Source: Ascidiella aspersa (lineage: Eukaryota). Taken from it: a stretch of 64,000 nucleotides of DNA. Within the stretch, counting starts at the first letter, position 1, and every line of letters starts with the position of its first letter. Positions 9,194 to 54,700 of this stretch are shown piece after piece. Position numbers and translations under genes: made by a program. The stretch covers positions 28,334,001 to 28,398,000 of the forward strand of contig OZ004610.1 in assembly GCA_963924565.1 (NCBI GenBank), in the 5' to 3' direction. The notes beneath the pieces were generated by a model that made no database searches, had not been told where the DNA came from, and was given only the letters and a program-made list of their open reading frames with translations.

Positions 9194-12100
9194 ATGAAAC
9201 GGAAAACAGTCTCTCATTATTTGTTGCCACTTGCCTTTCTTCTGTGCATTCGCATCTTCGTGGGTAAGTAGAAAATTTGGTTTTAATTACTCATACTGGA
9301 TAGGATAGGGCGTTACAATACGTCCGTTCTCCTTTATTGACAAACATTCTGGCTTCATTTTAACATTCTAAATTTGTATTACATTTAGAAATTAATACTC
9401 GGAGTTTGTTTTCAATTCTGGCTATTTACGATCGCCAGAACTCGTAACACATAGGTACAATAAACACACTTACCCTCATTGGACTAATTGGCATGCATAA
9501 AATTTTAAATTGTTATTAGACCAAAGACCAATACTGGGACGATAATATCGGGTATCTCATTCGGTACATTTGTATAAAAAGTGTATAAAAACGGCGCTTT
9601 TGTTTGTAAAAGTGAAATGTTTCGTATTTTGGGGTAACCTGTTTATAGTTATAACCTTATAAAGGGCAATCCAGCATCATTGATGTCTCGCAAAAGCGAA
9701 AATGTGCAAAAAGATAAGTTGACCACCTTTCGTGTTTTAAAGGGGTTGTTCCACCTATCAACGACCTTTCCTGGCCATGTATAACTTTTTTTGAAAATAA
9801 ACTATTTTGTTGAAATTAAGTTATTTATCAATTTATAATGTCAAAGATTATATTAACCAAAAAAATAAAACCTAGCGCAAACTATTGATTTTTACGTATA
9901 GGGTGATTAAACATATAATAATCCAAGAAAGACGCAATAATACTACACTTGTATTAAATATTCTAAACTCAACATAACGTCAGAAATCTGCTCGGGTATA
10001 CCTCCCGAAATACTTATACGCGACCTTGGTGGAACGTGTCTCAAGTTTCGAACAACTGCTGGTTTAACGCAATTCCCAACATTATACTTTTAATGTAGTT
10101 CATCTTCTTAGTTGTAAATTTTACAAACTAAACAAAATTAATGACACCAATGATCTGGTTCCTAAGTGACATTACTATTATGCTTAAACAAGCAAAATAG
10201 ATAGAATTGAAACGTTCAAAGGTAACTTGATACGCATCTCCAGTTGTTTCCTACTATTTGGAGCATGATGGTTGGAGATTGTAGTAAGACGTAATAAGAA
10301 TATCAAAGCCCATACAGAAGTAGGTATCATTTTTAGCCTCTATGTTGAAAATGAATAAAGAGTTATTCGCAACGTTCAAAATGATACCTACTTCTCTTTT
10401 GATAAACTTTTAGTTCCCATCCTTACGCTTTAACGTTTTTGTCTCCAAATGACAGGCAAAGCTCAGGAAGACTGTGGTGGGGTCCTTACAGCGACCTGGG
10501 GCTACATAATGAGCCCGGGGTACCCTGTGAATGGCCAGGAGGACGCCAGGTACCCCCCAAGTGTTGACTGCACTTGGACCGTCCCTGGGGAATCGGATAC
10601 TTTACAAAGGGTGAGGTTAAATTATAAAATATATTTTTTTTCACGTTGCAACGAAACTAGATGTGGTAGCCTTGTTTGCCAACATGAAACTAAATGTCAT
10701 GAAAGTCAAACCCAGTCCATAAGGCAGTTGTTTTCACAACAATTTGAATGTCACAACACTACTTACGCTGCAAATAAGTCATTTTAAATGACCTAAAAAG
10801 TCCCAGTCAAGTTGTTAAAGTCTAAATTAATTCAAGTCATTTGTAAAATCAAGTATTTTGTGACAAAGTCAAGTCTCAGTCAAGTCATAATTGGAGCAAG
10901 AAAAGTCATTAACTCCGTTTCATACAAAATTAAAAATTAAACTAAAAAAATGAAAGTTCAATTATGAGCAATAACATACATACAACAAAAAGGCAACATT
11001 TAGCACGAAAAATGTAGGCCTATTATGGGCAAAAATAATGATAAACAACCCAATTTATAAAATAATGCGTAAATTTGTGTTTTTTATGTTACTTTTAAGA
11101 AAAAATATCAAAGCCTTTATATTTCGAAAAAAGGTCCTTTATACTTCGCCTTCTTTCCTTTACTTTTGTTCTCTTTTCTAGTTTTTTTTATCGCTTTTAT
11201 CATCACTTGAACTCTTACACTGATAATGGCATGGGATATTGCCGAAACATTTTTGAACAACGAAATGTCGATTTTATCTAACATTATTGCTTTTGATATT
11301 TTTATTGAAACTAATAAGAACGCCTGTATATTGTGTTCCAAAATAAGGTTACATTTTTTTATTGTAAATGCGCTTTTTTGATTTCCACATTGAGATATAA
11401 CCGTTGTAACAAATTGAAACAACTTATATTTGAAAACTTTGAAACATAAAGGTTGGAGGTTGGAGTAAGACGTAACAAGAATATCAAAGCCCATACAGAA
11501 GTATAGGTAGCATTTTAAATAACATTTCATTTGTTTTCAACATCAAGATAGTTTGAATACATCACGATGTTAAAAATGAACAAAGAGTCATTCGAAATTT
11601 CAAAAAGATAGCTACTCTTGCATGAGCTTTTATATTCTTATTACGTACATTTATAAAGTTGCGTTTCTTCGACCTTTCCATCGAACCTGGTGAAAACAAC
11701 TCCAACATAACGTGCGATTACGACTATCTCAACGTTAGTCTGCCCTCCATCGGGTGGACAAAGTATTGCGGGTAAGTCCTGAGTTACTCAGTTAATTGTA
11801 TTTACTTGGGTACACGATCTGTAATGTAGCTTGGTAATAAATTGCAAAGTGTCAAATCTACTCAACATTTTTGGATTTGCAATTTATCATCAAGCTAATT
11901 GTATTTACGTTTTAAACTTTTATTTCATTTGTTCTGTGGTTCAAACGGCGCCTGTCCTTGTCGTTTTATGCAAGCTCTAAAAAGGGGTTGGTAATAGTGA
12001 AGACATATGAAAGTATGTAGAAAACTATTGTGTTGACACTTTCAATAAATCTTTTTTCTACTTTTTTTAAATGTTACAAAAGCTCTGGCGAAATGTACTG

Positions 12101-51700: not shown

Positions 51701-54700
51701 AAGTTTTTTTTATACGATAATTTTCGCGCCCCATTTGTGACACTGGTGCTATACGCGTACGTGACTCACCTACGATTCAATGCACAAAAAATACCTATTA
51801 CAAATAACAGTGCTTTGAACCCCAATCACATCTAAGTCGCTTCCCGACGTGTGGCGACGTATTCACTTACTTACCACTAACTAACAGCACGTTTAGAGTA
51901 CGTAATGTTAAGGTGATACTAGGATTTTGTGGTTACCTTATAGCTTAAATCTTTGGTAGCCGTCAATAAGACCAATGAGAGACGAAGAGACGAACTCTTG
52001 TATAATGCAAAGCTCTTTTGTGAGTGAAGGCTTGCTTCGAATTGACAGACTTAGGGTTGCCGCAAAGTCTTCAAACCTTTAAATGTCTATAAATTTATTT
52101 GCATATTGAAAAGTCTTAAAAATCCCTTTTTTTCTGAAATTCTTTGATTTGATTTTAAGTGCAGCTTAAGTAATGTGTTTTCAAGGAACACATTTTTTTA
52201 CTATTTGTTATTCGCTTTACCATTATATTTACACTATCTCGTTTTCGAGTTATTTTCAAAACACGCAGGGTGATACAATTTTAATTAACTTTTTTTAGGG
52301 CTTTGGATTTGCATCATAAAATGCGCGGTATTTTTGGTCCATTTATTTTTGGTTGCGATTCACACCGTCATGAATATCCTCTTAGTTTCGGTATATTATC
52401 GCGTGGTTTCGAAGTCGCGCATGCAAAGTTACTTTTTTATTCACACGTGTTGTTTTGAGCGACTTTCGGTGTTGCGCAAAATTTTCAAAGAAATTTCGAA
52501 GAATTGATTAAAAAGGCGTTTGCACTCAGAGCGCCTTTTCCCTGAGGCTTTTGCATTTAGAGTTTCATTCAAATATAAATTTGCGTAATAGTGGATGACG
52601 TTGTCTATACGGAAGTTGGTTAACACTGTGCATTTCCACCCTAACTGACATTTATCATTTATGCTTAAAAGGGAAAGAAAGGGTATTTAGTGCCCACATC
52701 ATACCTATTTTTGATTTTGTTCCACCTATTATGGCTCAAAAAGCTCTCATGTGACTTCAAAAACCCAGTTGTTCCTTGCCTTGCATAAATTTGTTTAAAA
52801 AAATACCTAATGTCGTACAAGTGTGAGATTTTTGTTTGTTATGATTACTTGGCGCACCAGACAACTAAAAAGGGTGGTAACACCGATCTGATAGCAAATT
52901 AAATAGAAATATCAACCACGGTTTGCAATCCAACGAAGCGAGGTAATTTATTGAAACATAGTAGTTTAACAACTGGAGGTAGCCAAACTTAACGTTTAAG
53001 CAAATTTTTAGCCTAATAACACGGAAAACTGCATTTGTACTTTTTAATTTGAATTATTTCGACTATTTGAGCATATTAATATATTCGGATAGCGATACTT
53101 TTCCTAAAAAATGTCTGGGATCGGTTTAAAATACAATGTTAAGTATCTGACATCTCTACTTGTTTGTGACCGTCTTCGATTACGCGTCTTGTTTTAAATA
53201 TTTAAAAGTTGATAATTCTTGAGTGTATGTTTCACCTAATAACTGCGGAAAAGAGAATATATGTTTTACCTTATAACTGCGGAATGAAAATATTTTGTAA
53301 TTTCTACAAAAATCTTGGCGTATAGTTTGTATGAACCGTGTAAAGTAATACAATTATCCTAAATGTGTTATCCTCGGAAAAACGATATTTTTTTATTTGT
53401 GCCAAAATTGTAATTTTTTTTAACTTGTAATTTTTATTTAATTTGTGCACACACAAATCTAAAAAAAATTGCTCAGACTTAAAAAACTAGTTTACAACCC
53501 TTTTTTCCACTTTCTTTGCAATTAACGTACTTATTTCTTTACGCAGAGGCAACAGCGTGATCCTTGCCGACGAGATGGGCCTTGGTAAGACAATCCAGAG
53601 CATCGTATTCCTGTCCTACCTCTACCACACGCACGAGCTGTACGGTCTCTTCCTGGTTATCGTGCCCCTCTCCACTATGACAGCCTGGCAGAGCGAGTTT
53701 AAGCTGTGGGCGCCTTTCATGAACACCATAGTTTATATGGGCGACCAAACCAGCAGGGCTACGGTGAGTGCAGGCTCTTAGGATACAAGAGCAATGTAAG
53801 GCATGCATGCTTTTTGCTACTATAAAAAAATCCTTGTAGTACGTTATAAGAATGTCAAAGGGCTCCCCTCCCATACATAAGTAGGTATCATTTTTACAGT
53901 TTCAAATAACTCTTTAATCGTTTTCAACATAGACCCTGTTTGGTAAAAAAGATACCTACATTCTGTATTAGCTTTGATATTCTTATTACGTCTTGCTACA
54001 AGCTCTAACCATTATGCTCCAAAGTTTCTTATAGTGTTTGGTAAATTCCCTAGACCGGGGTTGGCCAATCAGTAGAAGATCAAATTTGTTACTTGGTTAA
54101 CCGCAAAGAGCCACATCTTACACTTAGGCAAAGATAAATATCACCCAGCACCCTGTTTCTATCTCACCACCTTTGCCTAGCAAGATTTTTTCACTAACAA
54201 TATTGTGTAGGGCTGTAGGCTATACGATTTTTTAATCACAAAAAAAAAATATTTCACAAAAAAAAAGCAGGACTTAAATCAATTCCATCAGGTTGTCTAA
54301 GTTTTTAAAGTCCGTTAACTTGATTGAAAATGAATAAAGAGTTATTCGAACGTTCAAAATGATACCCACTTCTGTATGGGCTTTGATATTATTACTACGT
54401 CTTACTACAACCTTCAACCATTATGCTCCAGAATTTAATATGTTACACTTAGGCTTAATATTTGGTCGCTAAAAAGAAAAAAAGATTGACAACCTCTGAT
54501 TTGGAACAATACGTTCGGCTGGTTCGCCCATGATTTTATAATGCCTGTTCTTAATGTCAATAATCATCAATTTCCAAAAACTACAGACCACCGTAACGCG
54601 TTCTTTTTTATGTCACAGATTCGCGACATCGAGTGGAAGTTCCCGAACAACCGATACAAGTTCAACGCGGTGTTGACCTCGTACGAGATCCTACTCAAGG

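Follow-up and report, generated by a model that had tools for sequence, protein, structure and literature searches.

A minimal hammerhead with a U3-A8 core in the tail of a Penelope-like element of Ascidiella aspersa

What kind of repeat is F1, the most abundant repeat in a 64,000-nucleotide stretch of the Ascidiella aspersa genome, and why do its arms begin with a sequence that resembles a hammerhead ribozyme in which U3-A8 stands in the place of the C3-G8 pair? The stretch, referred to below as the window, covers positions 28,334,001 to 28,398,000 of contig OZ004610.1 (assembly GCA_963924565.1; C4:28334001-28398000 in our coordinates). The original prediction, made from these letters alone, took the double change at positions 3 and 8 as a sign of selection on a ribozyme fold. 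The analysis described here identifies F1 not as a free-standing repeat but as the terminal ~113 nt of a Penelope-like element (PLE) 2,666 bp long. Very probably, this tail carries a minimal type-I hammerhead in which U3-A8 replaces C3-G8, and has spread through the genome as solo tails. The hammerhead reading of the motif is borne out by the PLE parentage of F1 and by comparison with related elements.

F1 as part of a Penelope-like element

The hammerhead-like motif UG-UUGAAAA-U-GAAUAA(AGAG)UUAUUC-GAA-ACGU-U-CAAAA, which the original prediction had placed at a series of sites in the window, was confirmed by direct reading and pattern searches at 10345(+), 13932(+), 18963(-), 35288(-), 43384(-)/43389(+) and 54324(+). 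A 35-nt motif pattern allowing up to three mismatches has four matches in the window, compared with 0.00 in 100 shuffles, and BLAST with a single F1 arm returns about 11 copies or fragments between 10260 and 54436. In the whole genome (308 Mb in 75 contigs), a 32-nt pattern with either pyrimidine at position 3 and either purine at position 8 was matched 1,523 times (770+753) with no more than one mismatch, the reversed-pattern control giving 0 matches. Among the matches listed, all 100 of the 100 perfect ones have the UUGAAAA core, with U or C at position 17.

In the longer F1 copies the motif is preceded by ~330 nt of internal sequence, and a search with this sequence revealed arrays with a spacing of 2,666-2,671 bp on C4, C3 and C9. 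The repeated unit is a PLE with one open reading frame (ORF) of 840 amino acids (aa), encoding a reverse transcriptase (RT) with a C-terminal GIY-YIG endonuclease. At L062 this ORF occupies 3134-5656 (840 aa; RVT_1 E 1.8e-9, GIY-YIG E 7e-4), and 1,460 PLE-type protein relatives of it were found. In tandem units the arm is present both before and after the ORF, that is, in the arrangement of a pseudo-long terminal repeat (pseudo-LTR); the ORF traverses the arm and the constant end into the next unit and stops 144 nt short of the next arm. The genome holds two uninterrupted 840-aa ORFs, a few near-intact ones and many 5'-truncated copies.

The ends of F1 point in the same direction. Thirty genomic copies share a single constant end (...CCAACCATTATGCTCC), the opposite end being variable, and the target-site duplications (TSDs) that flank F1 copies measure 8-15 bp. 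In the foldbacks one arm attains the constant terminus, while its inverted partner ends ~31 nt before it, near GTAATAAGAAT. Whether position 17 is C or U, the state is identical within 13 of 13 inverted pairs among the matches listed; since the inverted arms share this state, each pair was made in one insertion event. As published, PLEs form pseudo-LTRs by partial tandem arrangement, are heavily truncated at the 5' end, lie beside an inverted copy that is itself 5'-truncated, and bear a tail of 30-40 bp on one side only (PMC8557442). F1 shows these hallmarks in its 5' truncation, its inverted 5'-truncated neighbour, its variable TSDs and its one-sided tail of 31 nt. Target-primed reverse transcription with frequent 5' truncation would have scattered well over 1,500 solo tails, many of them inserted along with a 5'-truncated copy in inverted orientation, so that the two form the 'arms' of the foldbacks.

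Our initial guess was a different one, namely that F1 is a miniature inverted-repeat transposable element (MITE) or foldback DNA transposon whose central imperfect palindrome resembles a hammerhead by chance. Like MITEs, F1 combines long inverted arms, short length, TSDs and high copy number; many copies are indeed long inverted repeats with TSDs, the motif itself is partly palindromic, and the only Rfam models that F1 foldbacks match, below threshold, are those of microRNA hairpins. Unlike MITEs, F1 has a single constant end with many truncation points at the other, TSDs that vary between 8 and 15 bp, a 31-nt tail on one side only, and a parent with RT and GIY-YIG domains instead of a transposase, the arm being continuous with the RT/GIY-YIG ORF in tandem units. 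In addition, foreign PLEs have the same architecture in the same place, built from other sequences. The original prediction had held that TSDs together with terminal inverted repeats of a DNA transposase family would speak against a ribozyme; TSDs and inverted arms do exist in F1, though not as those of such a family. The MITE/foldback reading was dropped in view of the one-sided constant ends, the variable TSDs and the RT/GIY-YIG parent, and is almost certainly wrong.

Three loci show unusual arrangements of F1 arms. L006 (G000:C2:34865753-34868852, about 1380-1860) contains a short tandem array of 143-bp units with direct F1 arms, which terminates in an inverted pair, a single TSD flanking the whole. 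It is the only place seen in which F1 hammerheads of the same orientation lie near enough to dimerise within one short transcript. L004 (G000:C8:8487617-8490716, at 1501-2000) and L011 (at 1124-1620) carry TSD-flanked 'mini' elements of ~500-540 bp, consisting of an inverted truncated arm, ~330 nt of the PLE 3' untranslated region and a direct arm with tail. These minis resemble insertions that were truncated at the 5' end and paired with an inverted copy, and they do not look like a separate non-autonomous family.

The U3-A8 core and its relatives

Cervera and de la Pena (2014) described minimal hammerheads in the pseudo-LTRs of PLEs that lack helix III and are palindromic at 15.2-16.2 (PMC4209133). 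In them one base is left unpaired between A9 and G10.1, G10.1 pairs with C11.1, helix II is long and helix I short; the motifs occur in inverted pairs 100-700 bp apart (PMC4209133). The F1 motif shows each of the features listed by these authors. Intact units read UUGAAAA ... GAA-ACGU-C, dispersed copies having U or C at position 17; an extra U lies between A9 and G10.1, helix II has 6 bp and is closed by G10.1-C11.1, helix I is very short, and the palindrome ACGU (15.1-16.1: A-C-G-U) takes the place of the absent helix III. The core boxes are likewise present, with U3-U4-G5-A6-N7-A8-A9 (positions 3 and 8 being complementary), G12-A13-A14, A15.1...U16.1 and a base other than G at position 17. 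F1 is thus a new family in a known class, a PLE minimal hammerhead with a U3-A8 core.

The closest known systems are these PLE minimal hammerheads, among them those of the Cercyon elements of Schistosoma mansoni, in which the same authors reported a covariant U3-A8 core with ~1,300 hits (PMC4209133). F1 shares with them the pseudo-LTR site, the lack of helix III, the palindrome at 15.2-16.2, U3-A8, the bulge before G10.1, the pairing of G10.1 with C11.1, the long helix II next to a short helix I and the prevalence of solo or inverted-pair copies. F1 differs in its host and PLE family, and both its 2-bp helix I and its AU-rich helix II are among the weakest of the range. The use of U3-A8 by PLE hammerheads is therefore not new, having been published in 2014 (PMC4209133), and a full-text literature search for 'U3-A8' together with 'hammerhead' returned this paper alone. 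Our data go modestly beyond it. Where the Cercyon report concerns a single species, U3-A8 is found here in 15 of 34 independent PLE motifs and proves common and recurrent across PLE lineages, and the Rfam models miss all the minimal PLE hammerheads considered here.

As to these models, the Rfam hammerheads RF00163, RF00008 and RF02275-7 have no match in the window at gathering score, and none appeared at E<=10 in 19 F1 loci or at E<=5 in full PLE units and GIY-YIG loci. A whole-genome run of RF00163 gave 0 matches with 74 of ~39,700 candidates scored, so it says little. With the type-I hammerheads that RF00163 represents (animal satellites, SINE-like repeats), F1 has in common the core layout, the topology and the reliance on dimers when helix III is short; it differs from them by the absence of helix III and loop 3 and of recognisable loop-loop contacts, by the extra base after A9 and by U3-A8. 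The claim that standard searches would miss this family stands insofar as Rfam does miss F1. The core change cannot be the sole reason, since the minimal hammerheads of this genome that have a CUGAUGA core are missed too, and the absent helix III is as much the cause. A covariance model (CM R1) built from 32 foreign motifs, none of them from this genome, assigns 43.6 bits (E ~4e-9) to F1 in intact units and 16-34.6 bits to F1 copies in the window, these scores being read with the reservation that the training motifs had been picked by a descriptor that F1 also satisfies.

The F1 core was compared with those of an external set of 85 PLE loci (336 kb), 80 of which came from a scan of metagenome contigs. 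The strict descriptor found 36 matches in these 336 kb vs. 0.6 in dinucleotide shuffles, and five in the window vs. 0.16. Since it demanded helix II and the palindrome, unbiased evidence comes only from the 3-8 pair, helix I, the bulge, G10.1 and the place where the motif lies. With positions 3 and 8 left free (16 possible combinations), the unique PLE motifs have C-G in 19 cases and U-A in 15, C-A and U-G being absent (0 and 0; Fisher p 5e-10 for this split). The remaining three of the 37 motifs, with other combinations, have zero helix I pairs and were taken as background. The one-base bulge is present in 36/37, G10.1 in 35/37 and ACGU in 25/37. Helix I complementarity averages 3.4 bp compared with 0.52 bp in shifted controls, and the motif lies either 44-800 nt past the end of the ORF or immediately ahead of its start.

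Both helices covary between PLE families. In the alignment of the 32 foreign motifs, 89.7% of cells are paired as compared to 56.6% after shuffling, with many double changes; the three inner pairs of helix I are formed in 32/32, 30/32 and 28/32 motifs, with 16-19 double changes each, and helix II is 96.9% paired, partly by construction. For helix II the covariation lies at this level: among the F1 copies themselves none was seen; these are young, derive from a single master sequence and differ by random decay only. The elements whose proteins are closest to that of F1 (46-49% aa identity) have the same architecture after the ORF stop with unrelated helix II sequences, and their cores are UUGAUAA, UUGACAA or CUGAUGA. 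A descriptor scan also showed that this genome harbours a second PLE family, whose motif combines a CUGAUGA core with a GCAC/GUGC helix II and an AGCU palindrome and occurs twice in the window; the motif adjoins the GIY-YIG ORFs of L053-L059.

The RT tree of 31 elements requires at least seven changes of core state, at least five of them forced by well-supported branches, and places the F1 element within a 99%-supported clade of seven that includes both core states. In the 34 independent motifs, positions 3 and 8 are either C-G or U-A and never mixed. Because the double change is both recurrent and clean, it supports the selection on the tertiary pair that the original prediction had suggested.

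Could the conservation instead reflect the protein? The initial 12 codons of the ORF overlap with the motif, and an open frame of 837-840 codons starts at the AUG immediately ahead of U3 as well as at the AUG formed by A9-U-G10.1. Yet the first ~45 residues are unconserved among relatives, whose motif is untranslated and has the A9-U-G10.1 AUG out of the ORF frame, and the substitutions follow base-pair covariation and not codon conservation. For these three reasons (N terminus, untranslated motif, covariation pattern) the coding-constraint reading was rejected, and we regard it as very improbable.

A sister PLE family with 44% aa identity to the F1 element was observed at L149 (G000:C7:11294500-11299500) and L150 (G000:C3:20856500-20861500). 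Its uninterrupted ORFs of 848-880 aa are flanked by CUGAUGA minimal hammerheads that score 49.4 bits with the model from foreign PLEs, arranged as a direct pseudo-LTR pair in one locus and as an inverted pair in the other.

Predicted cleavage and its possible loss

On the preferred reading, what each arm carries at its inner end is the minimal type-I hammerhead of the PLE. By analogy with the published PLE hammerheads, RNA from full-length tandem masters would be able to pair with a second copy via ACGU and be cut after position 17. In intact units A9-U-G10.1 is an in-frame AUG, 26 nt upstream of the predicted cut after C17, so that cleavage would yield an RNA whose 5' end is four bases before the in-frame AUG of Met14. 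Such cleavage would need a second copy for helix III to form, and is probably slow and protein-assisted. The Poseidon element PAc of Anolis carolinensis, in which the ORF starts at stem II and the cut occurs 26 nt downstream (PMC11167929), has the same AUG/cut layout as F1, and in neither were RNA sequencing (RNA-seq) ends seen at the cut (PMC11167929 for PAc). The PAc core is C3-G8 and its cleavage was shown in vitro, needing the element protein, whereas that of F1 is only predicted. As an explanation for the conservation of the bulged U, the use of A9-U-G10.1 as start codon holds for F1 (and PAc, per PMC11167929) and fails for L111 and L134.

A number of results weigh against this account, beginning with the silence of the Rfam models and the structural demands built into the descriptor, both described above. 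Helix I of F1 has two contiguous pairs, compared with at least three in 28/32 relatives; the original prediction had rightly called it weak, the consensus having 2 bp, a mismatch and then 1 bp. The helix II hairpin has a folding energy of -1.3 kcal/mol, the median of the relatives being -3.9 and 3/32 being as weak. Folding of the F1 monomer gave no stable structure and was no better than that of shuffles (z +1.27). In one raw RNA-seq run with the same species label (ordinary complementary DNA), no pile of read starts or ends appeared at the predicted cut, L062 3168|3169, which the reads cross, or at any other position; in the same run the F1 arm is covered ~290-fold on both strands and the ORF 0-3-fold. 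As 94% of the reads over the arm extend into unrelated flanks, and hence represent read-through of dispersed copies within other transcripts, the read-end result is uninformative more than negative. Finally, the minimal hammerheads of PLEs have been reported to show poor cleavage in vitro, and in the one reconstituted system the hammerhead was dispensable for insertion (PMC4209133, PMC11167929).

These observations give some room to the idea that the F1 motif derives from a hammerhead that has lost catalysis and is kept in the masters as a protein site, as translation-start context or for template recognition by the RT. The weak helices, the lack of a stable monomer fold and of RNA-seq ends at the cut site, and published activity that is low or protein-dependent and dispensable for insertion in vitro (PMC4209133, PMC11167929) would all fit, as would the fact that Naiad PLEs thrive without hammerheads (PMC8557442). 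Nevertheless, every core position is retained in intact units and in 1,523 near-perfect copies, the helices are equally short in other relatives, and positions 3 and 8 have stayed Watson-Crick through at least seven switches with no mixed states, which is hard to explain unless the tertiary fold is selected in this PLE clade. Loss of catalysis is accordingly a possible but rather unlikely account. A minimal hammerhead carried by the PLE tail remains the reading we prefer. Its most far-reaching form, in which U3-A8 is a recurrent selected alternative PLE core and the ribozyme of the young F1 family with intact ORFs is competent in vivo, perhaps through slow protein-assisted cleavage, is offered tentatively and may well prove too strong.

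Window copies and significance

The dispersed copies, including all those in the window, are dead relics. Every F1 copy in the window is decayed and none is intact, those at 35288 and 53934 being older; the statement that most copies carry inactivating changes can even be sharpened, each window copy having at least one disabling change.

Among the foldbacks, that at 10260..10395 consists of an inverted arm with terminal tail (10260-10333), a short loop and a direct arm, as delimited by BLAST; the direct arm (motif 10338-10383, plus strand) is right-truncated, has A13 changed to C and scores 34.6 bits with CM R1. An old foldback at 11434..11648 (minus arm 11434-11543, plus arm 11567-11648) retains 72-83% identity to F1 arms; its hammerhead core is destroyed and the covariance model gives no match there at E<=1. 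The foldback at 13852..14005, with a tailed inverted arm, the motif at 13927-13967 (+) and a direct arm without the 31-nt tail, is flanked by a TSD of ~12 bp and scores 33.7 bits. It alone among the F1 copies of the window passes the strict descriptor, and its helix I is broken by a 1-nt deletion at position 17/1.1, the cleavage site. At 35212..35390 (minus strand) lies an older divergent F1-like foldback with helix II mismatches in its motif (35250-35295; 23.6 bits). The foldback at 43287..43415 includes a full inverted arm with tail, whose mutated motif at 43346-43391 (-) has G10.1, C11.1 and G16.2 all altered (26.7 bits), and a short direct arm fragment at 43389-43415. A decayed foldback at 53834..54027 (minus arm 53834-53933, plus arm 53946-54027) preserves a motif remnant at 53892-53934 and scores 16 bits.

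Two copies are solo 5'-truncated tails. The one at 18846..18965 (minus strand, 24.7 bits) begins at core G5, reaches the constant 3' end and is bordered by a 15-bp TSD. The 5-bp helix I that had been attributed to this copy is not part of F1: what look like U3, U4 and helix I belong to the target DNA and recur in the TSD. The other tail, at 54317..54436 (plus strand; motif 54317-54360; 27.4 bits), has lost one A from GAA-A and has its constant 3' end at ~54430. The remaining pieces, found by BLAST, are arm fragments at 36029..36080 (minus strand, 81% identity) and 45054..45112 (plus strand, 78% identity) and a terminal fragment with arm end and tail at 39897..39976 (minus strand, BLAST vs. L030).

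The window also has minimal hammerheads of at least two to three non-F1 PLE families with CUGAUGA-type cores. The two copies of the second family, recognised by the descriptor through their CUGAUGA core, GCAC/GUGC helix II and AGCU palindrome, are at 15255..15296 (minus strand, 23.8 bits) and 56833..56874 (plus strand, 24.6 bits). A decayed hammerhead of a third family at 60395..60438 (minus strand, 30 bits) has a GGCGA/UUGCC helix II and resembles the sister PLE of L149/L150; its G8 is changed to A, with C3 unchanged. Further non-F1 minimal hammerheads are found at 62084-62129(+), 11213-11258(+) and 14125-14166(+). Some of these non-F1 motifs are decayed, e.g., to CUGAUAA, with positions 3 and 8 unpaired.

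Other observations concern base composition and unrelated loci. The G+C content at 36001-40000 of the window is 0.47, markedly above the 0.34-0.39 of the remaining window. L051 (G000:C35:36721-39927) holds a bacterial-type ribosomal RNA operon with the 3' end of the small-subunit gene and a large-subunit match of 1270 bits over the first 1,584 positions, with a long insertion; a GIY-YIG match (50.6 bits) lies inside the operon. This contig is probably of organelle, symbiont or contaminant origin, with an intron-encoded homing endonuclease that is unrelated to the PLEs. At L056, a transfer-RNA-like match of 32.1 bits, just over the gathering score, lies at 2323-2403, downstream of the PLE GIY-YIG region.

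For the genome of this animal, the results explain an abundant repeat, present in well over 1,500 copies, as the debris of one PLE, and they show its odd UUGAAAA core to be a real, selected hammerhead variant and not noise. As regards annotation, Rfam misses the minimal PLE hammerheads of either core in this genome, and a small purpose-built covariance model detects them. Since a 2014 paper already described this kind of element together with the variant, the present work extends what is known and does not describe a new kind. That C3-G8 and U3-A8 have repeatedly and cleanly replaced one another in different PLE lineages is evidence from natural history for the tertiary pair known from crystal structures. 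If the U3-A8 core is indeed a recurrent selected alternative that is active in vivo, PLEs would offer a natural system for a ribozyme that has repeatedly crossed a two-step fitness valley.

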